Source: Octopus sinensis (taxonomy: Eukaryota). From it: a stretch of DNA of 64,000 bases. The position numbers were made by a program, and so were the translations under genes. Below are positions 9,349 to 64,000 of the stretch, piece by piece (the stretch's first letter is position 1; every line of letters starts with the position of its first letter). The DNA is taken from assembly GCF_006345805.1 (NCBI RefSeq), contig NW_021836306.1, positions 1 through 64,000 on the forward strand. Direction: 5' to 3'. The notes under the pieces are model-generated. The model did not search any database and was not told where the DNA came from. It was given only the letters and a program-made list of their open reading frames with translations.

Positions 9349-9528
9349 GAGCAAGATTTCAAAGTTCTAGCATCCCTCCTTCATAGTAAGCCTATAAACC
9401 TTTTAGACCAGCCTCATAGCCATTTCCCTGAATGATTTATCATATACATCCAGCATATTTTTGAGCTTAGCTGAGGTTCATCTTTCAGCAAATGACTCAC
9501 CACAGACATCACAATGAAATGGCTTCTT

Positions 9529-13230: not shown

Positions 13231-13487
13231 CCCCGATGCGGTTTCGATTCCCGGACCGGGCGATGCGTTGTGTTTATTAAGCAAAACACTTCGGATCTTT
13301 TTAGCCCCTTGCATAGGAGAATGGAAGAAGCACCCGCGTACAAGGCGAAAGACTACGCCCGTGTAGCCAGCAGCCTGGGAGAAGCAACTTCTGCTCAATG
13401 TTCTTGCTATTTGTGAGTAAATCTAAGAAGAAAAAAAAACAGAACCAAAGCCTTAAAATTGTGATACCTGTGCAGGTGGCACGTAAA

Positions 13488-15855: not shown

Positions 15856-16676
<821 letters not shown>

Positions 16677-16922
16677 CACTGTGATATCCGTTGGAAATCA
16701 TTCTCTGTGTGGAAGGGCTTAACTAGTGACAAACATATTCAAAAGACAAGGAAATCTTGTTCCTTACACTATCAACAAGAAGCACAAGTTTGCGGATAAA
16801 CCATTTCTCGAATCTAGGAAGTGTTTCATGAAAAAGTATCAACCTAGGGGCCTTACCCAGGAAGAGAAGCTGGATATTCTGTGTGTAGAAGTGAAATTTT
16901 ATCATAGACATGTGGTGCTGCA

Positions 16923-17745
16923 CAGTAATAAGAGACCCGGGTGAATGAAGAAGAATGCAAATGCCATGAATGTATTATGAATGCCCTCGATTGATGCAAG
17001 AAGCTCTGCAATGACATCTGGACCCAATGTTGAGACTGGAGAAGTTTCAGAGCAGAAGTTGACTGGAAAGGAAATCCAAAATTCAGTAATAAGAGACCGG
17101 GTGAATGAAGAAGAATGCAAATGCATGAATTGTATATGAATGCCCTCGATTGATGCAAGAAGCTTGCAATGACATCTGGACCCAATTTGTTGAGACTGGA
17201 GAAGTTTCAGAGCAGAAGTTGACTGGAAATGGAAATCCAAAATCTTCAGTAATAAGAGACCCGGGTGAATGAAGAAGAATGCAAATGCCATGAATTGTAT
17301 TATGAATGCCCTCGATTGATGCAAGAAGCTCTGCAATGACACTGGACCCAATTTGTTGAGACTGGAGAAGTTTCAGAGCAGAAGTTGACTGGAAATGAAA
17401 TCCAAAATCTTCAGTAATAAGAGACCCGGTGAATGAAGAAGAATGCAAATGCCATGAATTGTATTATGAATGCCCTCGATTGATGCAAGAAGCTCTGCAA
17501 TGACATCTGGACCCAATTTGTTGAGACTGGAGAAGTCAGAGCAGAAGTTGACTGGAAATGGAAATCCAAAATCTTCAGTAATAAGAGACCCGGGTGAATG
17601 AAGAAGAATGCAAATGCCATGAATTGTATTATGAATGCCCTCGATTGATGCAAGAAGCTCTGCAATGACATCTGGACCCAATTTGTTGAGACTGGAGAAG
17701 TTTCAGAGCAGAAGTTGACTGGAAATGGAAATCCAAAATCTTCAG
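16923..17745. repeat. Tandem repeat, 5 units of 161-167 bp
   Basis: CAGTAATAAGAGACCCGGGTGAATGAAG starts at 16923, 17084, 17247, 17412 and 17576, with a partial unit at 17743. Confidence 0.95.
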
Positions 17746-18287
17746 TAAATCCTGATCTTCATCTAAATCTTAATTTGGTGATTCAATACTGTTGATCTTT
17801 TAATATTTACTGAGATTATTTTTCTCTGGAGGATATATATATATATATTCTTTTTTCCCCACGATCTTAGACCCCTCCTTGGAGTCAGCATCCTGTCCAG
17901 CAGACCCCAAAAATTCTTTTCTTCTTCTTCCCTCTCCCTTCCCCTCTTTTTCTTTAGCACTCATCCCAAAATACAAAAACACACACACACATGCTCTCTC
18001 TCTCACTTTCTCCTCATCCTTCTCACCCTCTTGTACTGTCTTATATTCCTCCCGACCACTACAAACTCAATACCACTATAAAATGGTCCAAACTCTTCAG
18101 CCAGGAACTTAGTTTGATTTGGAAAACCCACTGGAATGGGAGAAAGTGCTAATACATGATCTAAGTTATATGATGTATAAAAACATGTAATATACAAATA
18201 AATATCTGTAAATATAAACCATCCGATTTTCTGAGTACCTCATTTCTTCTAATATAAAATACCTGTACATCATCTCCAAACCTCCCA

Positions 18288-18322
<35 letters not shown>

Positions 18323-18544
18323 ATATTATATATATATATATGTGTATGTATATATATACCACTGATAGTGTTTAGAAGACCTTGTATCTTCTGTGATGGT
18401 GTTAATACATGGGACCAATGCCAAGACAGACATTCATCTCAGTGGAATCTCCTCCTTTCCCCTGGACTGTCCCTTATTAGGGTGTGTACTATGTCTTCTC
18501 CCCCCACCCCCACTACACCTCATCATCCACTACAATCCCTACAA

Positions 18545-21500: not shown

Positions 21501-22140
21501 TCACGCCTCCTTCCTTCAAACGGGAAGGAAGAGCTATTTTTATCATACTTGTGGCTATGGCGAAAGAATGTATCTGGTGGACGCCTCTGAAAGGATTAGA
21601 GACAAACACTTTCCTCTCTGGTCAATCTCTCATCAACTTCTTCAAGTATAACTTGAAGAGGAAAGTGAGAGTAGAGAGGCAAATTTTGTCTAGTGAATGT
21701 TTTAAAAAAAGATGGGTGAATGTAGCAAGGATGGCACGTATGAATGACGAAGCCACCTTGACTATGATTCTATGAACCGTAAAAATTAATACAGAGAGTT
21801 GCTTATTTGCAAAAAAAAAAAAGAAATATAACATGTGACTTCATTGACCGAGGTTACCGTGGTCTTTTCCGTAGGCTTTTCTTTCCACAGGTAAACCTCA
21901 CCTTTCCTCCCCTTTACACTTCATATTGACATTTCTGTGATAATGATCCCTATTGATCAAATTTTTTTTCCTTCCCCCCACATTTTTTTTTATTTTATCC
22001 CCCCCTTTTTTGTCCTCTTTCTTTCCATTTACGATCCCTTTTGATCGAAAACCAAACCCCCTTCTTTTACCCTCAAAAGAAAAGCTCTACCTTGTAATAT
22101 TGTCCTGTCTGTGTGCAGCCCTGTGTGGCTAATAAAGAAA
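18545..22140 (+). mobile_element. Tx1/L1-clade non-LTR retrotransposon ORF2 (APE-RT-CCHC), 5' truncated and disrupted
   Basis: APE motifs (GGDWN, SYLDRI, YTDH), RT motifs (KSPGFDG, FRPITLLN, RQGCPLS, YADD) and CPRC...H...C knuckle. The 3' UTR ends AATAAAGAAA. Stops at 19812 and 21052 plus frameshifts. Confidence 0.95.
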
Positions 22141-24167: not shown

Positions 24168-25772
24168 CATCATCATTGTTTAGCGTCTGCTTTCCATGCT
24201 AGCATGGGTTGGACGGGTCAACTGGGGTCTGTGAAGCTGGAAGGCTTCGTCAGGCCCAGTCAGATCTGGCAGTGTTTCTATGGCTGGATGCCCTTCCTAA
24301 CGCCAACCACTCCGCGAGTGTAGTGGGTGTTTTTTACGTGCCACTTGCACAGGTGCCAGACAGAGCTGGCGAACGGCCACGAACGGACGGTGATTTTATG
24401 TGTCACCGGCACGGGGGCCAGCCGAGGCTGGAAACGGACGCGAACGGATGGTGCTTTTACGTGCCACCGACACGGTTGCCAGACAGAGCTGGCAAACGGC
24501 CACGAGCGGACGGTGCTTTTACGTGTCACCGGCACGGGGGCCAGCCGAGGCTGGCAACGGACACGGACGCATGGTGCTTTTACGTGCCACCGACACGGGG
24601 CCAGACAGAGCTGGCAAACGGCCACGAACGGATGGTGCTTTTACGTGTCACCGGCACGGGGGCCAGCCGAGGCTGGCAACGGACGCGAACGGATGGTGCT
24701 TTTACGTGCCACCAACACGGTTGCCAGACAGAGCTGGCAAACGGCCACGAGCGGATGGTGCTTTTACGTGTCACCGGCACGGGGGCCAGCCGAGGCTGGC
24801 AACGGACACGGACGCATGGTGCTTTTACGTGCCACCGACACGGGGCCAGACAGAGCTGGCAAACGGCCACGAACGGATGGTGCTTTTACATGCCACCGAC
24901 ACGGGGCCAGACAGAGCTGGCAAACGGCCACGAACGGACGGTGCTTTTACGTGTCACCGGCACGGGGCCAGGCGAGGCTTGCAACGAACACGAACAGATG
25001 GTGCTTTTACGTGCCACCGACACGGGGCCAGGCAGAGCTGGCAAACGGCCATGAGCGAATGGTGCTTTTACGTATCACTGGCACGGGTGCCAGACGAGGC
25101 TGACAGCGGACACGAACGGATGGGTCACTTAACCCCTGCTTTCTGATATATGATTTGATTTTGATTGTTCTCACTAGTCTTGCCGGGTCTTCTCACGCAC
25201 AGCATACTTCCATAGGTCTCGGTCTCTGGTCATTTCCTTGGTGAGACCTAGAGTTCGAAGGTCGTGCTTCACCACCTCGACCCAGGTTTTCCTGGGTCTA
25301 CCTCTTCCACAGGTCCCCTCAACTGCCAGGGTGTGGCACTTTTTCACACACCTATCTTCATCCATTCTCACCACATGACCATACCAACGCAATTGTCTCT
25401 CTTGCACACAACATCTGATTCCTCTTAGGTCCAACTTTTCTCTCAAGGTACTTACACTCTGTCGACTATGAACACTGACATTACACATCCAACGGAGCAT
25501 ACTAGCTTCATTTCTCGCAAGCTTACGCATGTCCTCAGCAGTCACGGCCCATGTTTCACTGCCATGTAGCATGGCTGTTCATACACATGCATCATACAGT
25601 CTGCCTTTTACTCTGAGCGAGAGGCCTTTAGTCACCAACAGAGGTAAGAGCTCCCTAAACTTTGCCCAGGCTATTCTTAAGCCGTTACACTTTCAGCACA
25701 CCCACCCCCACTACTGACTTGGTCACCAAGATAACGGAAGCTATCAACTACTTCTAGTTTTTCCCCCTGGAA
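24168..25772 (-). mobile_element. 5'-truncated RTE LINE: RT C-terminus, 3' UTR minisatellite and (ATG)n tail
   Basis: ORF 25174-25572 (LHGSETW, RQLRWYGHV, GRGRPRKTW), followed on the minus strand by the minisatellite, GGTTGGCGTTAGGAAGGGCATCCAG and a TGATGA tail. Confidence 0.9.
24333..25125. repeat. GC-rich minisatellite, 13 units of about 60 bp in alternating A/B types
   Basis: A = TTTACGTGCCACCGACACGG..CCAGACAGAGCTGGCAAACGG; B = TTTACGTGTCACCGGCACGGGGGCCAGCCGAGGCTGGCAACGG. Order is ABABABABAABAB. Confidence 0.9.
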
Positions 25773-29521: not shown

Positions 29522-32500
29522 TTATTTGTCAAAATAAAAGAAAGCAAAAGATTGACGTCCAGGAATAATTCCAAAAACCATCAAAGAATTGTCTGAAACA
29601 TCCAAACCAAGAACTTCATAGACTTCATTATCATCCTCTCTGAGGAGTAAATATTTTGGATTATCTTTTAATCCCAGGATTTCATCATCCTCAGATGTTT
29701 CCTCTTCAATATGTTGAGGTATTTCGTACATATTGCTTCTTATATCTGTTATATAAACACATTCACCAATTATGGTTAGAAGAGGTCTTGGAATATAATA
29801 TCCCGGATCAAAAAATATTCCTTCTTCTATTCTTATCCTCCTCACCAAAGACTTTTCCCTGAACCATTCCACAAAACAATAAACTTCCCAAATTCCAGAC
29901 TCCTTCATCTCCCTCCTCAAAACAAGAACATCACCAAAAGATGTGACTCCCACACCATCCACCCCTTCATCTCCCTCCAACCTTCCCCGTCTCCACATAT
30001 TCCCACGACACACTTCATCTTTAAATTTCCCATCTTTGATATCAACCACATCCACATAATAAGGGTCAAAGATGTCAAGGTCCATGCAATAATAGTAATA
30101 CTTGTTGTTTCTCCATATTCTTTCGTATTTCTTTTGTCTCTCTTCTTGAGTTATGTCTCTAATATAATGACCACCGCACACGAGTTGATTGTCATTGTAT
30201 TTATAAATCCTGCTGTAGTATTTCTCAGTTCTGATGGTTTTTAAACGACGGAGATCCCTGTTGAAGACCCTCATTTCTCTCCCAAAGGTGACAACAAAAC
30301 ATTCCTCTGTCCACCGACATATGTCCAGTGCTGGTCGTTGTTGTTGTTCATGTTGAAGTATGTCCACTGTTGTTGTTGTTGTTCTGATTAATGTGACACT
30401 TTCTCGAAATATCAACACACTCACATTCTCATCTAACTTAATTAGTTTACTGTTCTGGTCCCTAATGTCCCTATAATCATAATTAACAGGTTCCTCAAAT
30501 GCAGGAATGGAAAAAGGGACCATTGCTGTCCTATATGGAAGTCTCCTCACTGATATTTCATCAATTCCTGAATTATTAATCTCCGCTATGTAATTACCAC
30601 ATCTCACCTTTAATCTACCTTTACCAATTATTTCACCTGATTTACCTCTTCTTCTTCCTCCTCCATCTCCTCCTCTGTATTCCAATTTGTTAATTAATTC
30701 ATTACTGAATATTTCCTTGTTCGTTTCAGATGTAATGGAAGGGAAACGAAGACCAGAATCAAGATTTAATAACGACACAGATTCCAGAATGTTCACTTGG
30801 TTCCCATCAAACTTTATGCAATGACATTCAATCAATTCATTATGTACACACCAGTAAATACACGCCACTTTTCTCCATATTACACCATAAGGGATGAGAC
30901 TCGACCAAACTTGATATGTCTGCAAATCTTCTCCATTCAGTTGTAATATTTCTTTCCTTTTAGGAACCGTGGCCATTATGTGTGATTCTTGTGCAAAACA
31001 CACACCACCAACTAAACTTGCAACATTTCTGTGACATAGCAACTGGCCGTCTTCATCGAATATTTTAACATTTCCATTATTGACTTTTTCACACACAACT
31101 GTCTTTCCTTCCTCAGAGACATCAAAATCTTTTACTTGAACAGGACATTCGTCTGTTTGTAAACGAGCAACCGGGAAGCTGTCTCGATTCACCATAAACA
31201 ACCCTTCAACATACATTTCATTCTCTCTTCTCAATTTGGGGCTTCCAACAAACCTTGGCCCTTTACAGTCTATACTGGAGAAATCTACTTCATCTTTATA
31301 AATTCTTTTATTTAAAAATATTCTCTTGTATTCCCCATTCTGGGTCAAACACAAAATGTTTCGATATTCAGATAAACCAAAACATTTCTCCCACTCACCA
31401 TAAATGTACAAAAAACTGTCATCAATTGTCATCCTGTCATCACCAAAATAATCCTCCATGTAGTGTCTGACTGAATGTAAATATTGACCACCACTGTTGA
31501 AGAAGATGATGAATCTTTCGTTGAAGACAATGATGACATCTTCATCAGTAACTTTAATATCATGGATTCTATCAGAATAATCTCCATCTTCGTTTCTCCA
31601 TATTAATGGTTCAGGTATGTCTATTTTATTTATTTCCTTCACACTCGAATGTATTTCATCAATATCAACAAAATGCAAATGTCTTCTATCTCCCGATTCA
31701 CTCAAAACCAGTTGATTATTTGATAAAGAACCCACACATTTATAATTATTTCTCGTTTGGTAAATTACCAACGACAATGGAAATTCCCCTTTTAATGTCA
31801 ACAGTTGGTATTTATTATGATAACGATCCCAATTCGTAATGACCAGTGTGTTTGACTGCCATCGACACATTTTAATATAATAATAAACATTCACTTTGAT
31901 TGAATCCATAAGGTGACCATCCAATGTGAATATCTTAATGTTTCCATTCTCCCCGTCCCATCCTGCAATCAGATTATTTTCAGTAAGAACCAAAGAATCA
32001 ATCCTCGCTGGTCCTTTGTCTCCCAAATGTTCAGGGAGAGGAATATGTCTGGCTTTATCAGAAACTGTGAGGTCCTGTAGATATAAAGTGGAAGACAACA
32101 TTTCACTGAGAGAAATGTGTCTGGAAAATACATCCACCAGGTCGATATAATAATTAAGTTGATTATTAGTAACGAGATCATTAACCAACAAATTCTGATC
32201 GTTTATGGCAAACATACGGCTTCTGTCTATCAGATAAACAGATGTTTGGTCAATAGATCCACCTTGGAGACTGAGGGGACGTTTCACTTGGGACATTAAA
32301 ACACTGGGGACCATCTGACGACCTCCATGACCACCACCACCTATTCTAGTGTTGTACTGAAAAGCTTTTTCCTTAGTAACAAGTAATAGCTTTTCTGTTT
32401 TCTTGTCTATTGATAAGGATTTCACAAACACAGGGATATTAATTGTCTTAATTACTTCGACTTGATTATAATAATTGATGGCTAAAATGTCAAAATGTGA

Positions 32501-34904
32501 TGGTTTATCACAATAACAAACAATTTCACATTCACCCATCTTACACACCCGTACATAAGGCTGCCTTAATGATACACTTCTCACTGTCTTTGATAGGTTT
32601 CCGATGACCCTTAATTGTTTCTGTAGGGGTAATGTGACCCCTATATGATTAGAATCCCATCGACATATATCTGTGGCTGTAGACGGCAGAGATAATCTGG
32701 ACACAATGTCTCCTTCCTCAGAAACGTACAACAAGCAATCATGCTTGATGTCGGACACCACCAACTGTCCATTGGACAGATTACATATTTCGCCAATGAC
32801 AAGTTTTTGGTCATTCTCCTTTTCTTTGAGTCGTAGATTTAGATTTCTGATATAAGGATTTTTAATGGGTAAAAGACAGCCAGATGACCGGTCTTGATAC
32901 TTGTAAAGAAGAACCCTGTTGAGTTGAGTGTCCGGGACATAAAGAGTTCCTTGGAAAACAGCAATGTGAGGGTGAACAGGGAAAGGCAGTTCCCACTGCC
33001 TTCATTTGTCCATATAGATCGTAACATCTGAGAATAGAGTGTCTCCTGAAGAGGACATAGAAATAAACATTATCAGAGTAGATGTGATGAGGGTGGCCAT
33101 AGAATGGAAGGTATTTTTGAAAAAGTTCTTCACCACATGTGGAATAAAATACCATTTTATTTTCGTTTCCATCTACGACTACAAAATTAATTGGAGTTGC
33201 AGCAATGCTGACATTATGATGTCCCAGAGAAATTCTTTCTGCAATGTCAACTTTATCTTCGTTGATCAAGAAGATATGGACCTCGCTTTTGTTTCCACTT
33301 GTGGTTAGAGCTAAACACTTATTTGATACAACATGACATAGTTCAATGTAATCAGTATGGACTTTCATTAAAGGGCCTTTCATTAGCCCAGGGCATGTGA
33401 TACACTGAAATTCTTTGTTTTCACGGTAAAACACCAGAAATCCTTTAGAATTCATTCTACAAAAGCAAGAAGGAATCTCAGGGAAAGTTGAATTATTTTG
33501 GTTAATTATTTCTCCAGTCTCAGTGATTAATATAGCTTTATTATTCCTGTAGAATATTAATATAGAAGATGTAGACATAGGTAGAATATTAGTAACGTTG
33601 TAGCAATCCTCAATATAAATATAGCTGTTCAATGTTGGGGTCCATAGCTGGAGGTTATATGACTGCCTGAGCCAAAAGTCTTCATTTGTTCCAATGATAT
33701 GAAGGACATCAAAATAATCGGTTACAAAAATGTTTTCTTTGCCAACAGAAATATGGCGGCATTTCATGCCAATTTCTCTTGTTGTCACAGCACCTGTACC
33801 TGATATCCGATAAATAATATGTCCCTGAAGGACATAAAAATGGTTTTGGTACACAGAGATGTGGCTTGGAATGTCCAGGGAATTGGTATCCACCTCAAAT
33901 AACTGCTGGCCATCCACATTGTAACAGGTAACCCTGTTAATATTGGAAAAGGATACTAAGAGTTTATTTTGTGCTCCTACAGCAATATCTGAAGGTGTTT
34001 CTTTCGTTATGAATTCGTATTTTATTCTATTCTCTTCCCAGTCAATGACGTATATGGTCTGACCAAACATTTCTACACCTATAAGCATAGAATGTTCCAA
34101 ATAAGAAACCAAGATTAATCCTAGCTGAATTCTTTTGATTTCAAAACTTAAAGGGTTGATAATAAGAATCATCTTTCGAAAGGGGAGGGTGGCCAGGACT
34201 GTGTCTTGACTGATTCTTGTAAAATCAGTGACAGAAGATGAGCAATGAACTTCATTTCTGTTGCCGTCTCTTGTTATACAACATATTGTCATACAGTGGT
34301 GGGAATATGTTACAATACCCCCTTGTATGACAACAATATTGGATATTGGGTTGCTTAAGTCTTCACCAGATTCTTCAATCACTACTTCTCTGGTCACAAC
34401 TGGCCGAAGAGGCCGAAATTTTGTGGTTACTTTTGGTGGTTCAATGGTCTTGTGGTTGTATGGGTTACAGGTGACATAAATGTCAAAGAGTCTTTGTTGA
34501 AACCAATCAAGATTTTGGTGAACAAAATCATTATTTTGTTCTGCAAATTCCAGAAATCTTGGCATTTTACATTTGATATTACGTAAAATTCAAGATCCAT
34601 TTAAACCCAGAGAGTCCATGTGATTGCATTTATCCTTTACATAATCTATAAACGTATTGATGTGGTCTGTTTTGATTAGTGTTTGGTAACATGTCACAAT
34701 ATGAAGGAAACTTGGTAACATGGACTTTTCCTGTTCTTTAGATTTCTTTGTGTCTTTTCTTTCCTGTTCTTCTGTTTTCTTTGTGTTTTGTGTATGTAAT
34801 ATTTGGGTAAGAATTGGTGTAGTTTCCTTATAAATTGCTGTTGTATCACAGACTGTGGCAGGAATGAGAGCCAACATTTTGTTTCCTTCATTAATCTTCT
34901 CCAT
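29522..34904 (-). CDS. Intronless gene or pseudogene of about 1,790 aa with about 6 tandem NHL-like beta-propeller domains
   Basis: ORF 34590-34904 and ORF 32862-34565 share a frame, separated by one TGA. One extra base at about 32999 links them to ORF 29522-32764. Blade-like motifs recur, e.g. ICNLSNGQLVVSD..DIC.W...IGVTLP..KQL. Acceptor at 35022. Confidence 0.75.
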
Positions 34905-38138: not shown

Positions 38139-38591
38139 CCATGATTCTTCCAGGCATTGCTGTTATAACATAATTAATGATGTGTCAATTAATAATTTAG
38201 GATTTTACCTTATAAAATACTGGGTAGGGGGATACATTGACTGCTATTTTTAGCATGTTGAGCGACCAGATAGAGGCTCTTTCATTGGTTTGATTGTGGG
38301 ATGAGATTTTTTTTACAATCTATGTATAATATTCATATATATATCATCGGCAGAAGTTAGAGAGTAAGTCAAAAGCTGAGAGTTTCATGTATTGGCGCTT
38401 ATCAAACACAAATTTGTCCATTGTCACTCAGTAACTTGTGACGAAATAACTTCTAAAATACAAAATTTTGTCAAAAACGTTAAGAGTAAACCCTGTTGTA
38501 TGTGACACATTCTACCAGTATTGGAAGTTTGAAAGTGTTTAGTTAAAAAAAAGTTAATTAAATAATCTGGACGTCAAATTGAATAGATCCG

Positions 38592-40520
38592 GGTTAATAT
38601 AGGGCGTAACAAATATCAGAAAATCAAAAAAAAAATGTGTGTAATAGGTGTAAAACAACTTCCTATGAACGAATATGAAAAAAAAAATTCGCGCACGCGA
38701 AAGGGGGGTGGGGGAGAGGCCTCGGAAAATTCACATCGGGAAGTTCCGAAAGCGTCTGAGGAGCTGACCCGGGCACCAAAACAAAAAAAAAATAGTGTAA
38801 TATGTGTAAAACAACTTGCTCTAAACGAATATGAAAAATAAAATGCGCTCTCGCGAAAGAGGGGTGGGGGAGAGGCCTCGGAATATTTATATCGGGAATT
38901 TCCGAAAGCGTCTGAACCGGGCACAAAAACAAAAACAAAAACAGCGTAATAGGTGTAAAACAACTTGCTCTAAACGACTATCATGAAAAAAATGCGCGCT
39001 CGCGAAAGGGGGGGGGGGGAGAGGCTTCGGAAATTTCACATCTTCAGTCCACGGCCTTTAAACTAAGAAAAAATAGTGTAATTGGTGTAAAACTACTTGT
39101 TCTAAACGAGTATCAAGAACACACACTCACACATGAATCATAAACTCCGTATTTCGCCAAAAAAAAAAAAATAAAGAGAAGAAATTCTGGAAAAAGTGAA
39201 GAAATGTTGGATCTCATTCCTTGGTTAAAGCTATTTTAAACATTAAATTTATGCTTTTCTTTGAAATAGTTCAGATATATGCAATTCTTTTCACTTATTA
39301 AGATGCATTTATCAGAAAAAAAGAGACAGAAAAAATTATTATTTTGTGTCAATCCTTCCCTAATTATCCTTTATTAATTAGTTTTGGCGTGTATTTTTTT
39401 CCCAAATTTATTCTTTCACCTTTACAACACTGTTTAGTAAAGCAATTAATTATCTTTATAATTTGCATATTTGACTTATTAATCAAAATTCTCTAGATGT
39501 AATATATACTAAGTAATGCATCCTTCATTTATGTGTTCCGTTCTGTATTATGCATGCGTGACTGTTTGTATGTAAGTGTGTTTAACTGTGCACATGAATG
39601 TGAATATTAAAGAACATATTTATTTACTATGATTGTTATTTTCAGAACAAATAAATCTTTTGGCTGTTATGTTATTGATGTTATTATTATTGCTAGTTAA
39701 AGGGTGGTGACTTGGCTGAATATTTTGAGTCTTGTAGTATGTAGTTGTGTTAGTCAATATTCTGAGTTCAAATCCAACTCATTTCTTTATCATCATTATC
39801 GATGGACCACTCAAAGAGGTATGTATACATTATCATTTTCGTAACATAATTTCTGTAGTATTTCAAGATGTTTCTGACACGTATTTTGATTCACATGGCG
39901 GAGATCCAACATTTCTTCACTTTTTCCAGAATTTCTTCTCTTTATTTTTTTTTTTTGCGAAATACGGAGTTTATGATTCATGTGTGAGTGTGTTCTTGAT
40001 ACTCGTTTAGAACAAGTAGTTTTACACCAATTACACTATTTTTTCTTAGTTTAAAGGCCGTGGACTGAAGATGTGAAATTTCCGAAGCCTCTCCCCCACC
40101 CCCCTTTCGCGAGCGCGCATTTTTTTCATGATAGTCGTTTAGAGCAAGTTGTTTTACACCTATTACGCTGTTTTTGTTTTTGTTTTTGTGCCCGGTTCAG
40201 ACGCTTTCGGAAATTCCCGATATAAATATTCCGAGGCCTCTCCCCCACCCCTCTTTCGCGAGAGCGCATTTTATTTTTCATATTCGTTTAGAGCAAGTTG
40301 TTTTACACATATTACACTATTTTTTTTTTGTTTTGGTGCCCGGGTCAGCCCCTCAGACGCTTTCGGAACTTCCCGATGTGAATTTTCCGAGGCCTCTCCC
40401 CCACCCCCCTTTCGCGTGCGCGAATTTTTTTTTTCATATTCGTTCATAGGAAGTTGTTTTACACCTATTACACACATTTTTTTTTTGATTTTCTGATATT
40501 TGTTACGCCCTATATTAACC
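38592..40520. mobile_element. Young non-autonomous fold-back DNA transposon, TIRs of about 620 bp, 8-bp TSD
   Basis: Arms 38592-39215 and 39901-40520 are near-identical reverse complements. TAGATCCG flanks both ends (38584-38591 and 40521-40528). Confidence 0.95.
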
Positions 40521-42355
40521 TAGATCCGAAATGGATAAAAAGCAAATTTGACCTCAGTGGAATTTGAACTCAAAATGTAAACAAAGGCGAAATACCCGTA
40601 AGCATTTCGCCCTGTGCTAATGTTTCTGCCAGCTCACTCCCTTGGAACAGAAACATTCATTTTAGCAATATATTCTTTAATATTCTTATAGCTGAAGCAT
40701 TACTTCCTTCTCTCTTACTGACACGAAATTTCCTGGCATTTCACCCCATGACTTTTCTTCTACGAATTTTTGTTCAGTGCAACTAACGACTCTGAATTCC
40801 TCATACATTTTTCTCTCATTTAAGCCTAAGAAAAGTATACTTTTATTTTAAAATTAAAAAGTTTATGTTAATTGAAGGTGAATAGGTGCCTTACTGCCCC
40901 CACCCCTCTATAGGTCCCAGATATTTTGATGTAACTTTTTTTCCACTGAACCAAATCTAAAACTATTTATGCCAAAGTGTAGCCGAGGAGGTGTCCTCTT
41001 TAAGACTGTTAACAGTTGGCAATTTAGTTGAGAACTGAATTAGTGGTGAAGCTTGGATTGACGGAATGGTGAACTTAAGAATATATTCAACCACTACCAT
41101 GGTTGAATGATAACCTTCCAATACTGAAACACGTGTAGTTCATTCCTAATGACAATTTTAACTTCAGTAGGAGGTAATTAAGGAAGTATATTGTATACCC
41201 TGCTGGTGTACTACTGGTTTCATCCTTAAAGTATTAATTCTTGATGTGCATACAATCTGACCCTACTATACTGTGTAGTCGACAAAATCAAAAACAACCA
41301 ACCATTATGTGTGTACGAAATTAGAAATATAAAAGAGCGACAATTTACCCATCGCAGCCTGTATGTGACGAGTGTGTGCATATATGATAATACAAATAAG
41401 TTATAAAACATATGGAAGCAGCTATTTTCCACATGAGATGTGTTAAGACAGAGCTCAATAAATATGCAATGAATTCCTGTTGGGATCGATAATATAATGA
41501 AAGATAATGATGTCCAAAACTGATGGACATGAGAAATTAAAACCATGAGAAACATTTTAAGGTGAAAACAAACCTTACCGTCCCGTACCAAATCCTTGCT
41601 CCACGTCACACCTCCTTGCTACTCCACCACCACCATACTTCTCCACATTGGTCCTCCCCATCCCGTTACACAACCCTCTTCTCACGCCACTATGTTGGAT
41701 GTTTGTGGGTGGGTGTGAGAAAGAGAGAGAGAGAGAGAGAGTACCTGTTTATACACACAACTATTTGAATGTATATGCGTATGAATAATACGTGTGTGTG
41801 TGTGTGTTGGCTGTATATGAGTAAGTATGTAGTTGTGTTGCGTTGTGTCTGGTGCTTGGTAACAAAGCATACAGTTTGGCTGTCTGCAGTTTGTTAGGCC
41901 AGAGAAGATATTAGCTTGCTTGGAAATAGAGCATCTATCCATAGAAAAAACTGCCTCAATGAAGTCTCAGTTGACCGGGGGAAGCAGAGAAAAAGTGACC
42001 CTTAAAAACGATCGTGCGCATGTATATATTTAATACCCTTTCTTGGGGCCCTGAACAACTAATGGAGTTGAAAGAGTATCCATGGGACATACAGTGTGTT
42101 TAGGGTGTTTTAAATCTGGAAGATCCCTTCTCTCTACATGCGTAACCCCTGTCAATGTCTTCCACGGAGAAAGAAAGAAGTAGTTGAGGAGGAAGTGGAA
42201 GAACAACGATGACAAATCTTTTGTCTCCTGTGAAAATATACAGAGTGTATCAAATACATATTTGAGAGTCTGCATAATGATGGGAGGAAATAAATACAAA
42301 CGTGAATGTGACTGTGTGTGCATGAATATAAGCATTCTTTTATTCTTTTCTATGT

Positions 42356-45445: not shown

Positions 45446-46472
45446 GAGGGGCGTTCAATAAGTAATGCCCCTGATCCACTTCCCATAGCAGTAGAGCAAC
45501 GAAACTTGGAACAGTTATTAGTCTTTTTCTACATAGGAACAACCCAGAGTTACGCATTTCTCCCATCGTTTGATGCAGCTCTGAAGACCGTTTTTGTAGA
45601 AGACACTAGCTTGGTCCTCCAACCACGACGTGACTTCAGAAATCAAGGCTGCATCATCTGGGAAACGCTTTCCTTTCAAAAACAACTTCATGGCTGGGAA
45701 GAGGTGAAAATCAGAGGGTGCAAGGTCTGGAGGGTAGGGGGATGGGGGAAGAGTTCATAGCCGCACGCCTGTGCTTCTGATCTGGCGACACGCGAGTTGT
45801 GGACCGGAGCGTTGTCCTGCAAGAGGAGGATGCCTTTGCTGATCTTGCCCCGCCTTTTGGTTTTGATAGCTTCTCTTAATTTCCTCAAAAGTGAAGCATG
45901 ATAGGCTCCTGTAATTGTGGTACCCTTTGCCAGGAAATCGGTCATCACTACTCCGTCCTGGTCCCAGAAGACTGTGAGCATGACCTTGCTAGCGGAGGGC
46001 TGCACCCTTGCCTTCTTTGGAGGAGGTGAGTCATGGTGCTTCCACTGCATTGACTGGGCTTTGGTCTCTGGATCATAGTGATGGACCCAGGTCTCATCCT
46101 GTGTAATCAGTCTTTTGAAAAATTTTGACTCATCTTCTTGGCACATCCCTAAATTCATCCTCGAGCACTCGACGCGTTCTTGCTTCTGGAAAAGTGTGAG
46201 CAACCTGGGAATCCATCTGGCAGACACCTTTTGCGTATGCAAATGGTCATGAATGATAGTTTCCACAGACCCGGTACTAATCTTGACCTCATGGGCTATT
46301 TGGCGAATAGTTATGCGTCGATCTTTCAAAATGGCAGCCTCAACTTGACAGACAGATGCCTCATCAATGGCAGAAAGGGTGCGACCAGATCTGGGAGCTG
46401 TTTCCACAGAGTTCCGACCATGTTTGAATTCACGATGCCAGCATTTTACAAGGTCATATGATGCTCTGGTTG
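45445..46472 (-). mobile_element. Mariner (DD34D) element lacking its 5' end
   Basis: WIPRLL, ITQDETWVH, QDNAPVH, then frameshifted [12 protein letters not shown]...GSYVEKD* (45518). TA|CGAGGGGCGTTCAATAAG TIR at 45443. Confidence 0.95.
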
Positions 46473-46519
46473 TGGTTGATTTTGTTGTTGCTGCTGTTGC
46501 TGTTCCGCCTCCTCCACGG

Positions 46520-46840
46520 GAGTGGCATGGGGGAGACACAATCGTCGGTTGTGGAGGCATGCAGGCCTGACACTGAAAAGTCCAAGATTTAAGCTGGACC
46601 ATCTTCCAGAGTCCATCCATCATAGCATTATGATGGCTCTTTTTTTTGGCCTGGGATCTTCTGAAAGTCCGTGGCACATTGGAGTCAGACAGAGACGAGA
46701 CATGTCCCACATTCGACCCAGCGATTACGGAACGTATTTTCGGGTTCCGTACAGATGTGGCAGGTGTGATTTTCTGGGCAGTGTTCTATTTTGGAGCAGC
46801 GACCAGTCTTATCGCACGCCGCTATGGATTCCACCATGGC
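46520..46840 (-). pseudogene. Disrupted PHD-finger-like coding fragment (possibly LINE ORF1)
   Basis: CHICTEPENTFRNRWVECGTCLVSV*LQCA, then after a frameshift SWTFQCQAC. The spacing is C4HC3-like with a stop at the His position. Confidence 0.55.
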
Positions 46841-52859: not shown

Positions 52860-53848
52860 TCGAGGGTAGATATTGCTTCAGCGAATAAAAAAATTGTCTT
52901 GAGAGGTTTATCATTGTGTGAGGTAACGAATTTGGACCAATAATACAGTTGTACTTCCTAAGTGAATAGCTAAATGGGGAGATAATTCCATTTTGTCAGG
53001 GAATGATTTCTCAGAGACATCACAATGCTGTGACTTTCCTCCTGTCTGAACACATTTGTGAGAATGTAAAACGTTTGCTTGAGAAAAGGATACAGCACAG
53101 ATGTCACAGTGATATGGTTTATCTCCCATATGAATGCATATATGAGTAGTTAAATGAAACCTTCACGTGAATGATTTACCACGGATATCACAGCTATATT
53201 GATTTCTTGTATGAATATGTTTGTAACTAAGGTATTTAAATTACAGAATGATATACCACAGATATCACAATGGTATGGCCTCCTTTGTGTATGAATATGT
53301 TTGTGTCTATTCAAAGCACCAGTTATATAGAATGATTTACTACCGATATCACAATGGTATGGCCTCCTTTGTGTATGAATATGTTTGTGTCTATTCAAGG
53401 CACCAGTTATATAGAATGATTTACTACCGATATCACAATGGTATGGCCTCCTTTGTGTATGAATATGTTTGTGTCTATTCAAGGCACCAGTTATATAGAA
53501 TGATTTACTACCGATATCACAATGGTATGGCCTCCTTTGTGTATGAATATGTTTGTGTCTATTCAAAGCACCAGTTATATAGAATGATTTACTACCGATA
53601 TCACAATGGTATGGCCTCCTTTGTGTATGAATATGTTTGTGTCTATTCAAAGCACCAGTTATATAGAATGATTTACAATGGATATCACAGTGATATGACT
53701 TTCTCATGTATGAACACATTTGTGTTTAGTAAAGTCAGTTGAGAGAAGGATTCACTACAGATATCAGTCATAAAAGCTTCTCTGTATGAATGTGCTTAGA
53801 TTTAGTTAAATGAGTATTTTCAGAAAAATATCCAACACACTGATATAG
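52860..53848 (-). pseudogene. Decayed zinc-finger tail downstream of the ZF4 stop, including an 84-bp tandem block
   Basis: ORF 53150-53719 has 5 copies of SFYITGALNRHKHIHTQRRPYHCDI, mostly lacking Cys2. ORF 52911-53129 has broken fingers. Confidence 0.85.
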
Positions 53849-54796
53849 TTAATCCCCTGTATGGGTCCGTTTGTGTTTAGTTAAGTTACCAGACTGTGAG
53901 AATGATTTACCACAGACATCACAGTGATATGGCTTCAGACCCATATGAATACGTTTATGATTAGTGAGACCATCATTCCTAGAGAATGATTTACTGCAGA
54001 TGTCACAGTGATATGGTTTCTCTCCTGTATGAGTACGTTTATGTTTAGTCAAGTGACCAGATTCAGAAAAATATTTACCACAGATATCACAGTGATATGG
54101 TCTTTCTCCTGTATGAGTACGTTTGTGGTAAGTCAAGTGAACAGATTCAGAGAATGATTTACCACAGATATCACAATGATGTGGTTTCTCTCCTGTGTGA
54201 ACACGTTTCTGACTAGTGACACCATCATTCCTAGAGAATGATTCACCACAGATGTCACACTGATATGGTTTCTCACCTGTATGAATACAGATGTGCCTGG
54301 TTAAGTTGTGAGTATCAGTGAATGATTTACCACAGATATCACAGTGATAAGGATTCTCACGTGCATGAATACATTTATGCGTAGTCAAGAGACTACTTCT
54401 AGAGAATGATTTACCACAAATATCACAGTGATATGGTTTCTCTCCTGTATGAGTACGTTTATGGTTACTTAAGTGACCAAATTCTGAGAATGATTTACCA
54501 CAGATATCACAATGATATGGCTTCTCTCCTGTATGAGTACGTTTATGTCTAGTGAGACCATCATTTTTAGAGAATGATTTACCACAGATGTCACACTGAT
54601 ATGCTTTTTCTCCTGTGTGAATACGTATGTGGACAGTTAAACTAAACCTTTTAGAGAATGATTCCCCACAAATATCACAGGGATATGGTTTCTCACCTCT
54701 ATTAATACATTTGTGTTTAATAAGGTTACTTTCCAGAGAAAATGGTTTCTTACACACACCACAATGGTATGACGATTTTTCAGTCACTTTCTGCAT
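53849..54796 (-). CDS. C2H2 zinc-finger protein ZF4, 315 aa, 11 fingers (2 imperfect)
   Basis: Intact ORF with TGEKPY-type linkers, ending TGD*. Acceptor at about 55177. Confidence 0.92.
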
Positions 54797-57823: not shown

Positions 57824-58135
57824 TTCCATAGCTAGAAATAGCAGCCAAATCTCGCATAAATAATAGACATCTCTCATCCATAGCTAGAAATAGCAGCCAG
57901 ATATCGCACTAATCATAGACATTTCTCTTCCATAGCTAGAAATAGCAGCCAAATCTCGCACAAATTATGGACATCTCATCCATTGCTAGAAATAGCAGCC
58001 AAATCTGGCACGGAACATAGTGATTTCTCTTCCATAACTAGAAACAGCAACCAGATCTCGCTTAAATCATAGATAACTCTCTTCCATAGCTAGAAATAGC
58101 AGCCAAATCTTGTACAATTCATAGACATCTCTGAT
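57824..58135. repeat. 52-bp minisatellite, 6 units
   Basis: CATAGCTAGAAATAGCAGCCAAATCTCGC at 57827, 57879, 57931, 57981, 58033 and 58085. Confidence 0.9.
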
Positions 58136-58558
58136 ACATAAAAAATTGGAGAAACACAACCAATCGAAAAGTCAAATACTGAACGTCTACTGATGAAATA
58201 CTCACGGAAAAGTTTCATAAAGGATAACGTTGTTATAAGTGCATTTGTAATAGATGAGAAATGTATTAAAAGTTAAGGAATAGAAATTCATTCAACCAAC
58301 AATTCAATTAATGTCAAGATGGAAATGGAAATATATCTCGTGCGTGGGTTTTACAGAAACCACGGTAGCTGACTCTTGTTACCATCTTTCTGTTCCTGGG
58401 GACCTCAACTTTGGCCGATAATTTGTTGGAAGGCATGCGAAAAACGTCAGACGTCTAAAATATTCTAAAAACTTCTTGGTATTATTTGAATGAACTGTCT
58501 GTGTCCCTCAGTAGATTGTCCTGTAGGGACTTCCAGTTGTCCAATATGCTATACATCT

Positions 58559-59350
58559 CTATTTTAAATGCTTCAAATAGAATTTTACAAAATTTCTTAC
58601 TGTTTTTGTTGAGTGTTTGAATTTATATATTGTCGTTTTCTGGAATGACCTATTTCTCGGAAACCTTCTAGCTCTAAGTTTCAAATCACAAACCACTAAC
58701 CTATGTTGAGTTGTACATTCATCACCATGGAAAGACTTCACATTCACAAGTATCTCATTTTCAAGTAAGAATGAAGTCAATCCAGTAAGAATCAAGTCAT
58801 ATCAATCAAGGCCATCTCCTTGAAGAAATTAGTGACTTGTCTGCTTTCCTACATGCTAGGTCTATGGGTTTTGCTAAATTAAGTCTAAGGCCCTCCAATT
58901 GCAGACGCTGCATCCACACCTTATATTCATTCTCTAACTCTTGTAGAAATTCCGCTATAAGAACAAGGTTATCATCATAGTGGAGCTCTCAAGGGCATCC
59001 AGTCTTAAATTCCTCTGCTATGGCTAGAAGGTCTATGATAAATAAGAGGGGAGTGAGAATTGATCCTTCGGGAACTCCTACTTGCTTACTAAATCCATTG
59101 CTACACACATTACCAACTTTCATCTTACTGACAGCATCCCTGTACACAGTTTGTATGGCTCACACCAACAACTCTATCCCTAGCTTCTGCATTAACCACT
59201 GAATAAGGAAGTGGGGGAACCTGTCAAAGGCTTTCTCAATGTCAAGTATAGAGGTTTAATTTTTACTAAATCCTTCTCAGTACTCGTCTTACAAAGAAGA
59301 AAACATCAGTAGTGCTTCTACATAACACAAAGCCAAACTGCATCTGTTTC
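58559..59350 (-). mobile_element. Decayed RTE LINE fragments (RT and EN pieces)
   Basis: MQFGF..RSTTD, LHYDDNLVLIAE (RT) and ECTTQHRLVVCDL (EN). Confidence 0.75.
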
Positions 59351-59977
59351 TCTCTCTTCCTAATTAGCTGAGCTATGAGCCTCACAAAAAGAGGGGGGCG
59401 TCAAGAACGGTCAGAATCTCATACAAAAAATTTCATTCCTCAATTTTAGTAAGGTAATTGTAGTCTAGACCCTCAAACACTTATCTCTGCAAAATTTAAT
59501 TTAAACAACGATAAGTAGGTTATGAGTAGACAGTCTGTTGTGGGGCACTAAACTATTGTTATGAGGAATATTCTTCTCTTGTGGTTTCTTCCATTTTGTA
59601 CAGGAGGTCATTGTTTATGTATATATTTGACAACTTTACTGCATCCGTGTGTTTGAAAAAGCCATGACTTGTGCTACCATTAACATATTTGAGAAGCATC
59701 TAAAAGCTAATAAAAAACAAATAAATATATATAGTAAATTGGGGAAGTGGTATTCAACAAAGAACAATGTGTAGGGTTGAAGGAGGAGAAGTTTCAGTAT
59801 AGGGGTCCCTACATCATGGGAAATGAAAAGAGCATGGAAGTGAGGCTTGTGTGAAAAGGTATGAAAGACAAAATTAAAAAACTGGAATTTTGGGAAATTC
59901 TTTATTTTCAGAATTGTAATTTCCATTACATGAAAAACAGGAATATTAAGAAAAAGAACCGAAGAAACAATTAGAAA

Positions 59978-62735
59978 TTAGTCTTTTCCTTTCTCTTCTC
60001 TCTGAATACATTTGTGTGCAGTTAAATTACTACATTTAGTGAATGATTTACCACAGACATTACAATAATATGGCTTCTCTCCTGTATGAGTACGTTTGTG
60101 TGAAGTTACGCTATAACTTTGAGAGAATGATTTACCACAGATATCACAGTGATATGGTCTCTCTCCTGAATGAAGACGTCTGTGTTTAGTTAAGCCACTA
60201 TTTTGTGAGAATGATTTACCACAGATATCACAGTGATATGGTCTCTCTCCTGAATGAAGACGTCTGTGTTTAGTTAAGTCACTATTTTGTGAGAATGATT
60301 TACCACAGATATCACAGTGATATGGTCTCTCTCCTGAATGAAGACGTCTGTGTTTAGTTAAGCCACTATTTTGTGAGAATGATTTACCACAGATATCACA
60401 GTGATATGGTCTCTCTCCTGAATGAAGACGTCTGTGTTTAGTTAAGCCACTATTTTGTGAGAATGATTTACACAGATATCACAGTGATATGGTCTCTCTC
60501 CTGAATGAAGACGTCTGTGTTTAGTTAAGCCACTATTTTGTGAGAATGATTTACCACAGATATCACAGTGATATGGTCTCTCTCCTGAATGAAGACGTCT
60601 GTGTTTAGTTAAGCCACTATTTTGTGAGAATGATTTACCACAGATATCACAGTGATATGGTCTCTCTCCTGAATGAAGACGTCTGTGTTTAGTTAAGTTA
60701 CTATTTTGTGAGAATGATTACCACAGATATCACAGTGATATGGTCTCTCTACTGAATGAAGACGTCTGTGTTTAGTTAAGTCACTATTTTGTGAGAATGA
60801 TTTACCACAGATATCACAGTGATATGGTCTCTCTCCTGAATGAAGACGTCTGTGTTTAGTTAAGCCACTATTTTGTGAGAATGATTTACCACAGATATCA
60901 CAGTGATATGGTCTCTCTCCTGAATGAAGACGTCTGTGTTTAGTTAAGCCACTATTTTGTGAGAATGATTTACCACAGATATCACAGTGATATGGTCTCT
61001 CTCCTGAATGAAGACGTCTGTGTTTAGTTAAGCCACTATTTTGTGAGAATGATTTACCACAGATATCACAGTGATATGGTCTCTCTACTGAATGAAGACG
61101 TCTGTGTTTAGTTAAGTCACTATTTTGTGAGAATGATTTACAACAGATATCACAGTGATACGGTCTTTCGCCTGAGTGAAAACGTTTGTGTTTAGTTAAG
61201 CCACTATTATCAGGGAATGATATACCACAGATATCACAATGATAAGGTTTCTCTCCTGTATGAATACGTTTATGTCTAGTTACGTCATTATTGCGGATGA
61301 AAGATTTACCACAGATATCACAATGATATGGCTTCTCTCCTGTATGAATACGTTTGTGTTTAGTTAATTTACCATTTTCAAAGAAAGATTTACCACAGAT
61401 ATCACAATGATATGGCTTCTCTCCTGTATGAATATGCCTGTGTGCAGTTAATTTACCATTTTCAAAGAAAGATTTACCACAGATATCACAGTGATATGGC
61501 TTCTCCCCAGTAGGAATACGAATGTGCTTATTTAAGTCAGAATTTTGAGAAAATGATTTGTCACAGACATTACAGTGATATGGCTTCTCTCCTGTATGAA
61601 TACATTTGTGTTTAGTTACGTTATGATTGCGGATGAAAGATTTACCACAGATATCACAGTGATATGGTTTCTCTCCTGTATGAATACGTATGTGTATTGT
61701 TAGGGCAGTACTTCCAGAGAAAGATTTACCACAGATATCACAGTGATATGGCTTTTCCCCTGTATGAATACGTTTATGTCTAGTTACGTCATGCTTGCGG
61801 ATGAAAGATTTACCACAGATATCACAGTGATATGGCTTTTCCCCTGTATGGATACGTATGTGTATTGTTAGGGCAGTACTTCCAGAGAAAGATTTACCAC
61901 AGATATCACAGTGATATGGCTTTCCCCCTGTATGGATACGTTTATGTCTAGTTACGTCATTATTACGGATGAAAGATTTACCACAGATATCACAGTCATA
62001 TGGCTTCTCCCCAGTATGAATACGTAAGTGTATTGTTAGGGCAGAACTTCCAGAGAATGATTTACCACAGATATCACTGTGATATGGCTTCTCCTCAGTA
62101 TGAATACGTAAGTGTATTGTTAGGGCAGTACTTCCAGAGAAAGATTTACCACAGATATCACTGTGATATGGCTTCTCCTCAGTATGAATACGTAAGTGTA
62201 TTGTTAGGGCAGAACTTCCAGAGAATGATTTACCACAGATATCACTGTGATATGGCTTCTCCTCAGTATGAATACGTAAGTGTATTGTTAGGGCAGTACT
62301 TCCAGAGAAAGATTTACCACAGATATCACTGTGATATGGCTTCTCCTCAGTATGAATACGTAAGTGTATTGTTAGGGCAGTACTTCCAGAGAATGATTTA
62401 CCACAGATATCACTGTGATATGGCTTCTCCTCAGTATGAATACGTAAGTGTATTGTTAGGGCAGAACTTCCAGAGAATGATTTACCACAGATATCACAGT
62501 GATATCGCTTTTCCCCTGTATGAATACGTTTATGTCTAGTTACGTCATGCTTGCGGATGAAAGATTTACCACAGATATCACAGTGATATGGCTTTTCCCC
62601 TGTATGGATACGTTTGTGAGTAATTAATTGACTATTTGCAGAGAATGATTGACCACAGACATCACAGTGATACGGTCTTTCTCCTCTATCTATTTCTATA
62701 ATTTTCTCACTCTTTTCCATTATTATTTCTCTCAA
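59978..62735 (-). CDS. C2H2 zinc-finger gene ZF5, about 32 fingers and 919 aa after correcting two 1-bp deletions
   Basis: A 680-aa ORF breaks at a missing base near 60719 and again near 60470. Adding 2 nt gives 2760 nt, ending KGKD* at 59978. The ATG may be at 62720. Acceptor at about 63061. Confidence 0.9.
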
Positions 62736-63314
62736 ATCACAATGTAAATATACTTTTCTTGTTTTTCTTCTTATCGTTTAATCTCACAAATACTTCCACT
62801 CCTGATTTTCTCTCCATTGTTTCCCTGCTCTAATAACATTTATGTAAATGTATCCAAGCACACAAACTCATCTTCTCGGCACTGCAGACAGTGATGTGCA
62901 AAACTTTTGCTAATCACATCAGATTAGAACAAATATTTCACAGAAATTCACAGCATATATATAGAAAGTGTTATAGAATTTGTATAGAATTTTCTTTCAG
63001 TTTCAAAAGATGATAAATACTGAGAATAGATCTTCTGTTATTCCAATGTCATCCGATATTCTGAACTAATAAAGAAACAACAGTGTAAGATAAAGAAGCT
63101 GCTTTCAAAATACAGATTCAACAGTGGAAAATTGACAACATTTCTACAGAGATAAACTTTAGAAATAAGCATTTACCCGAACAACTGAACTTTTTAATGT
63201 ATTAAAATTTACATCCCAGAATCTTGTGTGTAGCTTACATATTTGTAAACCACAGCTACACCTTCACATTGTGTAAGATTATTTGGATTAAACTGCAGAA
63301 GAGCAGGTAATAAC

Positions 63315-63567
63315 ATCCATAGCTAGAAATAGCAGCCGAATCTCGCACAAAACAAAGACATCTCTCTTACATTGCTAGAAATAGCAGCCAAATCTCGCAC
63401 AAAACAAAGACATCTCTCTTACATTGCTAGAAATAGCAGCCAAATCTCGGACAAATCATAAACATCTCTCTTCCATTGCTAGAAATAGCAGCCAAATCTC
63501 GCACAAAACAAAGACATCTCTCTTTACATTTCTAGAAATAGCAGCCAAATCTCGCACAAATCATGGA
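63315..63567. repeat. 52-bp minisatellite, 5 units, same family as 57824-58135
   Basis: Units at 63318, 63370, 63422, 63474 and 63527. Confidence 0.9.
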
Positions 63568-63569
63568 TA

Positions 63570-63768
63570 GGTACTACTTAAGAAGAGTGGTCCCGGTGCA
63601 GGCACTCGCGCTAGCTAGTCGTGACTAGTCGATCCTTACTTTGTGTTTTATTTCCTTTGTTTAAAAAAAAATTATTTATTTACTTTGCTATGTAGTCGTA
63701 GGATCGACTAGTCACGTGTAGCTAGCGTGGATGCGCGCGCACCGGGACCCCTGTTCGCTAGTAGTACC
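63570..63768. mobile_element. GC-rich hairpin MITE
   Basis: GGTACTACT...GGTCCCGGTGC...GTGACTAGTCGATCCT pairs with AGGATCGACTAGTCAC...GCACCGGGACC...AGTAGTACC. A related arm lies at 57650-57708. Confidence 0.75.
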
Positions 63769-64000
63769 GACTATACACTGAATTTTATGGAATTCATAAA
63801 AGACATTTCTGAAGTGGTGAATTAAGCAGTATAATACTGTCTAATGGATTTTCTCTTAAACTGTGATTGCGCCTGCAAGCCGGACGTTTTCACATCATTC
63901 CTTCGGACGTTCCTTTCCTCGGTGTCAGGAACGTCCAGTCGTTGTAGCACTCGGATGAATTTCGTATTCGTCCCACAGACGCAAGGAATTCCATAATCGA

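Follow-up and report, generated by a model that had tools for sequence, protein, structure and literature searches.

A long zinc-finger array of Octopus sinensis that very probably evolves as a coding minisatellite within a C2H2 gene cluster

Does a tandem array of nearly identical zinc fingers, varying at residues that contact DNA, point to a PRDM9-like gene in an octopus? The question is raised by the window analysed here, a 64,000-nt stretch of Octopus sinensis DNA (positions 1 to 64,000 of contig NW_021836306.1, assembly GCF_006345805.1; coordinates are the same on the unplaced contig VCDQ01006070.1 of GCA_006345805.1), which carries an array of 32 C2H2 fingers on its minus strand. A preliminary description had proposed a homogenised, PRDM9-like array, serving in the surveillance of transposable elements (TEs) or satellites, or in recombination targeting. 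Our analysis leads to a different answer. The array is very probably the only coding exon of a polydactyl C2H2 gene, lineage-specific and without effector, which belongs to an O. sinensis cluster and to the known octopus expansion, and the units of which evolve as a coding minisatellite.

Architecture of the array

Tandem Repeats Finder (TRF) reported one array at 59991-62689, with a period of 84, 32.2 copies, 89% matches and a score of 2983. Parsing of the minus strand gave 32 head-to-tail C2H2 finger units, finger 1 starting at 62672 and finger 32 ending at 59987, of which 30 are 84 nt long and two are 83 nt long. By both approaches, the 32-finger, 84-bp repeat first described is real. The pairwise matrix of units shows a clear block structure (Table 1). 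Different finger types are 14-30 nt apart (out of 84), and homogenisation is confined to two blocks, A (fingers 3-8) and C (fingers 19-30), so that the term "homogenised" suits these blocks but not the rest of the array.

Block A has four variable sites: Cys1/Ser, one synonymous site, S/T at helix position +2, already noted in the preliminary description, and E/G in the linker. Fingers 4-8 carry a serine in place of the first zinc-binding cysteine (TGT->AGT), together with a TEEKP linker. The 168-bp two-finger repeat that had been placed between the blocks corresponds to fingers 9-12. Its copies differ by 6 nt between fingers 9 and 11, and by 4 nt, all synonymous, between fingers 10 and 12. 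Finger 11 is only 1 nt apart from finger 2, which is also of the I type.

The 12 near-identical fingers of block C were found as described: 8 of the 12 units are identical at the nucleotide level, and the whole set is 0-3 nt apart. Substitutions occupy four sites, two in the +3 codon, one changing the linker (G->V) and one changing Gly to Cys (GGT->TGT), to which two 1-nt deletions must be added. At helix position +3, the residues of fingers 19 to 30 are, in succession, D G G G D N G G G G D G, which matches the order given previously; the helix numbering used there is also correct. The linker change was found in fingers 19 and 23, and the change reported as G-to-C in unit 1 is the GGT->TGT of finger 19. 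Markers are distributed as C/D/V in finger 19, D/V in finger 23, N in finger 24 and D in finger 29. The statement that +3 is the main variation of this block is right as to the residues, but +3 makes up only two of the four substituted sites, and at most two mutational events. Indeed, fingers 19 and 23 both carry the D+V haplotype, a sign that duplication of units propagated the variants. The four units without G at +3 hence go back to only one or two mutations of that codon, rather than to one each.

Absent from the preliminary description were the two frame-breaking deletions, the Cys1->Ser change of fingers 4-8, and the loss of the second zinc-binding histidine in fingers 14 (His2->Pro) and 32 (His2->Gln). 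As assembled, 23 of the 32 fingers are intact and canonical. Due to the two deletions, both in block C, the longest open reading frame (ORF), at 60693-62735, has only 680 aa (675 aa from its ATG), and the other fingers sit in two other frames. Apart from the deletion sites, the 32 units are uninterrupted by stops. A plus-strand ORF of 179 aa (62000-62539) was rejected as a gene, being an antisense open frame made by the repeat. Rfam and tRNA scans gave no RNA genes.

Table 1. Features of the array gene and of its surroundings, in window coordinates
Feature	Positions	Strand	Remarks
Proximal 5' leader/promoter region, conserved among cluster paralogues	62721-62900	-	alignment to O. vulgaris zinc-finger genes
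Start codon and 16-residue leader before finger 1	62673-62720 (ATG 62720-62718)	-	in-frame stops just upstream; MEKSEKI start
Fingers 1-2: unique finger, then I-type finger IRKHDVTRH	62505-62672	-	unit parsing and translation
Block A, fingers 3-8, S-type SGS[S/T]ALTIH	62001-62504	-	units 0-3 nt apart
Fingers 9-12: 168-bp two-finger unit (I-type and S-type), two copies	61665-62000	-	
Fingers 13-18: I-type, Q-like (His2->Pro), two F-type (FENGKLT), I-type, finger 18 PDNSGLTKH	61161-61664	-	
Block C, fingers 19-30, Q-type SQNS[G/D/N]LTKH, linker HSGERP	60155-61160	-	
1-nt deletion in finger 24 (AAA->AA)	~60718-60719	-	GGTAAATC -> GGTAATC; first frame shift, after which the 680-aa ORF stops at 60693
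1-nt deletion in finger 27 (GG->G)	~60471	-	TGTGGT -> TGTGT; second frame shift
Fingers 31-32 (finger 32 without last His), tail EEKGKD, TAA stop at 59980-59978	59978-60154	-	
Candidate polyadenylation signal AATAAA, ~72 nt past the stop	59901-59906	-	seen in the sequence itself
52-bp satellite upstream of the array gene	63318-63560	+	4.7 copies
52-bp satellite downstream of the array gene	57825-58140	+	6 copies, same orientation
C2H2 arrays in the 64-kb window, at least six	4789-5342, 9491-10710, 15880-16706, 53096-53719, 53849-54796, and the 32-finger array		

Recent amplification and variation at contact residues

An N-terminal match (P0246) led to a locus of O. vulgaris, OX597841.1:10,449,872-10,471,542 (called hereafter L003, with its own numbering), which holds three zinc-finger (ZNF) genes. 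Its positions 10106-11235 align to positions 64000-62872 of the window with 97.4% identity, and both loci have a satellite, the ZNF array, the 3' flank and a satellite in collinear arrangement. L003 is therefore the positional counterpart of the array locus. Another O. vulgaris locus (L002, OX597842.1), reached via the best C-terminal match, was rejected as counterpart: its similarity is only generic, 75-79% in any register.

The counterpart array, at about 11225-11990 of L003, consists of about 8-9 decayed units with stops, Cys2->Phe and frameshifts. These are a unit resembling finger 15 (79/81), an I-type unit with stop codons, a unit resembling finger 18 (81/84, Cys2->Phe), then a single Q-type unit; the remaining ones are a finger 16-like unit, two others and an end resembling finger 32. 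Fingers 15, 17 and 18 have counterparts of 93-96% identity in L003. The Q type, which is the type of block C, is thus represented by one finger, with D at +3 and 81/84 identity, versus 12 in O. sinensis. Identity is 99-100% among block C units, and about 95% between these and the unit of O. vulgaris. Taken together, these two observations indicate that the 12-unit amplification is very recent; the two species split about 2.5 million years ago. In-frame tandem units, higher-order blocks and this difference in copy number are the properties of a coding minisatellite. Of the "fast-evolving sequence-recognition module" of the preliminary description, the fast turnover is borne out by the state of the counterpart, but nothing in it is specifically PRDM9-like.

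The O. vulgaris unit and the Q-like finger 14 both have D at +3, which makes it likely that D is ancestral. Gly, which offers no base-contacting side chain, would then be the derived residue, amplified later. A simple series of steps probably accounts for the array. Slippage during replication, or unequal exchange, in the 84-bp register would have duplicated units singly, in pairs and probably in larger groups, giving rise to five finger families and to the two very young blocks, of 6 (A) and 12 (C) units. The G/D/N variation of block C would result from one or two point mutations, the ancestral D giving the G that was amplified, and N deriving from D. Unit duplication would then spread the variants.

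Homogenised arrays were also observed elsewhere in the cluster family. At 3445-4667 of L003, 14.6 units of 84 bp (94%) lie within an intact gene of 403 aa (3445-4799, minus strand), five consecutive units being identical and most of the variation lying at +1, at helix position +8 and in the linker rather than at contact positions. Within the window, a homogenised block at 53150-53719 (minus strand) contains four near-identical units (YHCDIGSKSFYITGALNRHKHIHTQRRP) with Gly for the second zinc Cys, and one further unit with His for it, so that a ligand-less finger was amplified. The recurrence of homogenised blocks in the family, ligand-less fingers included, argues for a largely neutral minisatellite turnover.

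Variation at contact positions was then quantified, contact codons being those of helix positions -1, +2, +3 and +6 (four per unit, so that 1/7 of sites are expected there). Entropy over all 32 fingers peaks at these positions, with 2.2, 1.8, 2.4 and 1.9 bits, respectively, and its mean is 2.08 at contact positions versus 0.59 elsewhere (Mann-Whitney p=0.0009). In two ordinary neighbours of the array, neither of them homogenised, the contrast was the same or stronger (2.57 versus 0.70 and 2.36 versus 0.63). Therefore, contact variability is a generic property of poly-ZNF arrays. For blocks A and C together, 3 of 8 substituted sites were in contact codons (p=0.09), and for block C alone 2 of 4 (p=0.10). 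When the S, I, F and Q finger families were pooled, the ratio of nonsynonymous to synonymous changes was 8:1 in contact codons versus 12:15 elsewhere (one-sided Fisher test, p=0.023). In the homogenised 403-aa paralogue of O. vulgaris (12 units), 2 of 11 nonsynonymous sites fell in contact codons, which is no enrichment. The proposed enrichment at contact sites is thus modest across finger families, and it is not significant in the young blocks and is also seen in ordinary neighbours. Among older duplicates, this modest signal indicates purifying selection on the finger scaffold with freer change at contact residues, as is typical of zinc-finger arrays that bind DNA.

Effector domains, relatives and surroundings

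The preliminary description saw neither KRAB nor SET domain, and invoked an effector acting in trans or encoded by an upstream exon outside the window. Its observation is confirmed. Pfam scans of the 675-aa piece, the C-terminal piece and the paralogues returned C2H2 families only (zf-C2H2, zf-H2C2_2), with no PR/SET, SSXRD or KRAB (PF01352), and in the 1.26 kb upstream of the gene (62736-64000) all three frames are full of stops, with no effector exon. Upstream of the O. vulgaris counterpart, the intergenic region extends over 5.3 kb to a ZNF gene of divergent orientation, and its ORF pieces had no Pfam match. Segment 62721-62900 and the start region share 69-73% identity over about 370 nt with L003 positions 4989-4615 and 20268-20615, belonging to two O. 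vulgaris ZNF genes. One of these, the intact single-exon 403-aa gene, has the same MEKSEKI start and encodes fingers only. The presence of this ATG and leader in intact single-exon paralogues argues against a missing upstream effector exon. The sequence therefore gives no support to a SET or KRAB exon immediately beyond the window, and a remote one would be formally possible.

Many Octopus ZNFs (the gene at 9529-10710; P0197, P0222, P0255, P0285, P0294, P0311) have an acidic N-terminal leader of about 35 residues, ME.EL.E..V...F.D...GK.SY.C, which corresponds to no Pfam family. The 16-residue leader of the array gene is a related short version of it. Such an acidic leader could be a short partner-binding motif.

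A 100-aa N-terminal query had as its best named matches ZNFs of O. sinensis, O. vulgaris and O. bimaculoides, with up to 70% identity. Among the matches listed for the 675-aa query there were only generic long vertebrate ZNFs (up to 59%), and among those listed for the C-terminal query generic vertebrate poly-ZNFs, none above 61%. Lineage-specific expansions of C2H2 zinc fingers in the octopus/coleoid lineage were reportedly noted by Albertin et al. in 2015. The octopus C2H2 expansion has been described by Holzinger et al. 2025 (PMC12513265) and Wells et al. 2023 (PMC10547256), and nervous-system or embryonic expression was reported for this family (PMC12513265). The array gene resembles its members in its tandem cluster, its Octopus ZNF relatives, its canonical C-x2-C...H-x3-H fingers joined by TGEKP-type linkers, its TE-rich surroundings, and its coding region, which is made of one exon, has a short leader and lacks accessory domains. 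It differs from them in its unusual length (32 units), its two very young homogenised blocks, its absence from the protein records and its frame, broken twice as assembled.

As to the surroundings, the closest ones are marked by the 52-bp satellite, which occurs at only two sites of the window, bracketing the array gene. It likewise brackets the O. vulgaris counterpart, at 9617-9789 and 10544-10792 (upstream) and 12436-13514 (downstream) of L003. The two sites of the window have no longer flanks in common, only the satellite itself. It may be a mark of the duplication/exchange cassette of the cluster. Downstream of the gene, a stretch of about 1.4 kb (59623-58188) is absent from the O. vulgaris counterpart. 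It holds a possible ORF fragment resembling an endonuclease of long interspersed nuclear elements (LINEs), at 58559-58795 (minus strand), which was recognised by eye and has no Pfam match.

Further away, a neighbouring ZNF gene at 9529-10710 encodes 393 aa. The arrays at 15880-16706 (plus strand) and 4776-5342 (minus strand) are broken by small deletions (1, 1 and 2 nt in the former) or have degenerate fingers, and may be either pseudogenes or products of assembly errors. Endonuclease and reverse-transcriptase pieces of a LINE lie in several frames at 18393-21775 (plus strand), and a mariner-type transposase ORF of 340 aa at 45688-46710 (minus strand). Two ORFs of 1080 and 567 aa at 29522-34565 (minus strand), without Pfam or PDB sequence match, have frames overlapping near 32650-32980, and look like one gene of about 1,650 residues split by a frameshift or an intron. 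A GC-rich 61/122-bp satellite at 24332-25123 (13 copies), also present at 19900-20190 of L003, creates long spurious ORFs. Finally, an inverted repeat (38586-39215 and 39901-40526) has arms of about 630 bp with 98.7% identity, about 700 bp apart. Each arm holds a 156-bp tandem repeat, and the whole may be a transposon or a foldback element.

State and function of the gene

Several observations weigh against a gene evolving as proposed above. As assembled, its reading frame is broken twice, and seven fingers lack a zinc ligand. None of the four block C substitutions is synonymous, and one alters the conserved linker, a picture as compatible with relaxed constraint as with function. The exact look-up did not find the 675-aa product on record (nor the 315-aa product of a neighbour), and no near-identical protein or fragment was found with the 675-aa, C-terminal or 100-aa N-terminal queries. 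The orthology of L003 is positional: the array body is about 82% identical and the 3' flank 74%, and exchange between paralogues may have taken place. A simple recognition code, with Q at -1 and K at +6, makes block C a predicted reader of a triplet-periodic G-N-A tract, and (GNA)8 with at most one mismatch had no match in the window.

The weight of the frameshifts depends on the quality of the contig. Both are homopolymer contractions, each confined to one unit. On the same contig, a 165-bp tandem repeat (16923-17748, 5 copies) shows about 12 singleton deletions of 1-2 bp, mostly in short homopolymers, and 0-1 substitutions, a pattern characteristic of uncorrected long-read consensus errors rather than of divergence. 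In the 5'-flank alignment with O. vulgaris (1,135 bp), there are 17 mismatches and 8 gaps, of which 3 are 1-bp deletions in A-runs on the O. sinensis side. At this rate of about 3 per 1.1 kb, several spurious deletions are expected in a 2.7-kb exon, where two were observed. The block C frameshifts may thus be assembly artefacts, and a pseudogene call from frameshifts alone was dropped in view of the deletion-only differences of the 165-bp repeat and of the A-run deletions. The ligand-destroying substitutions are more likely to be real, because the error type of the contig is the indel and because neighbouring units have these substitutions in common; they indicate that constraint is relaxed in part of the array. 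We put the gene being currently functional at roughly even odds.

A decaying pseudogene of a birth-and-death ZNF cluster, whose repeats expand neutrally as a minisatellite and whose variation has no functional meaning, is a serious possibility, though not the favoured one. Besides the frameshifts and the missing product, it would explain the spread of Cys1->Ser over five fingers, the missing His2 of two fingers (14 and 32), the purely nonsynonymous changes of block C (4 versus 0 synonymous, the linker G->V among them), the decay of the O. vulgaris counterpart and the broken state of three other arrays of the window. It fits less well with frameshifts of the very type that the contig accumulates as errors, with an exact 84-nt register and no other stop across 32 units, and with the 15 synonymous versus 12 nonsynonymous changes outside contact codons in the older finger families. 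The same uncorrected indels in tandem repeats, the shortness of the unplaced, 67,242-bp long-read contig and the failure of database searches to find an independent copy could suggest that block C, or the whole length of the array, is an assembly expansion. We consider this very improbable: block C carries ordered marker variants and is not a featureless loop, its 1 kb is well inside a long-read span, and the O. vulgaris assembly, which is independent, contains homogenised arrays of a comparable kind.

What the protein would do, if intact, is a separate matter. Like other octopus cluster ZNFs, it would be a sequence-specific DNA binder. An adaptively evolving recogniser of a TE or satellite, of the KRAB zinc-finger protein or FiNZ style, with a partner recruited via the short leader or in trans, seems rather doubtful. 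The vertebrate KRAB-ZFPs and cyprinid FiNZ-ZNFs share with the octopus array birth-and-death clusters, in-array finger duplication, a possible link to TEs, and a scaffold under purifying selection with variable contact residues, whereas the octopus array has neither KRAB nor FiNZ domain, and only its 16-residue leader. Repression by such ZNFs is not known in cephalopods. The contact-codon excess of nonsynonymous changes, the very recent 12-unit amplification not found in O. vulgaris, the conserved leader common to cluster paralogues, a TE- and satellite-rich locus, and the prediction that octopus ZNF ORFs prefer TE sequences (PMC10547256) all speak for such a role. However, Pfam scans gave no effector domain, enrichment is not significant in the young blocks and is missing from the homogenised O. 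vulgaris paralogue, the amplified Gly removes the contacting side chain at +3, and five block A fingers are without a zinc ligand.

The comparison with PRDM9, finally, is not borne out. Functional PRDM9 is defined by four domains (bioRxiv 10.64898/2026.09.07.749791). The octopus array has in common with it an 84-bp coding minisatellite with near-identical units, in blocks A and C only, a few differences of which some are in contact codons (+2 and +3), and an array structure that is sharply different between close relatives. In contrast to PRDM9, no KRAB, SSXRD or PR/SET was found in the gene, in the 1.26 kb upstream or in the 5.3 kb of O. vulgaris, and its start codon is conserved with effector-less paralogues. 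PRDM9 is a single conserved gene, whereas the array gene is one of many similar cluster members; moreover, the amplified unit has Gly at +3 and several fingers have lost zinc ligands. A PRDM9-type recombination-targeting module with its catalytic part outside the window or in trans, for which the minisatellite-like array with some +2 and +3 variation is the only argument, is therefore scarcely credible. More generally, a surveillance or recombination function would be pure inference.

The coding minisatellite in an effector-less cluster gene raises no new question on recombination control. Given the deletion-type errors of this contig in tandem repeats, frameshifts in such arrays should not be taken as pseudogenisation before the reads are checked. 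To the octopus C2H2 expansion already described, the array adds one concrete, dated case of in-array finger amplification. It is also conceivable, though unlikely, that the deletions are assembly errors and that the intact gene encodes an effector-less 32-finger protein, whose 12-finger block arose after the species split and would read a (G-N-A)n satellite or simple repeat. If true, octopus ZNF clusters would gain new DNA specificities via PRDM9-style minisatellite dynamics, without the catalytic parts of PRDM9.

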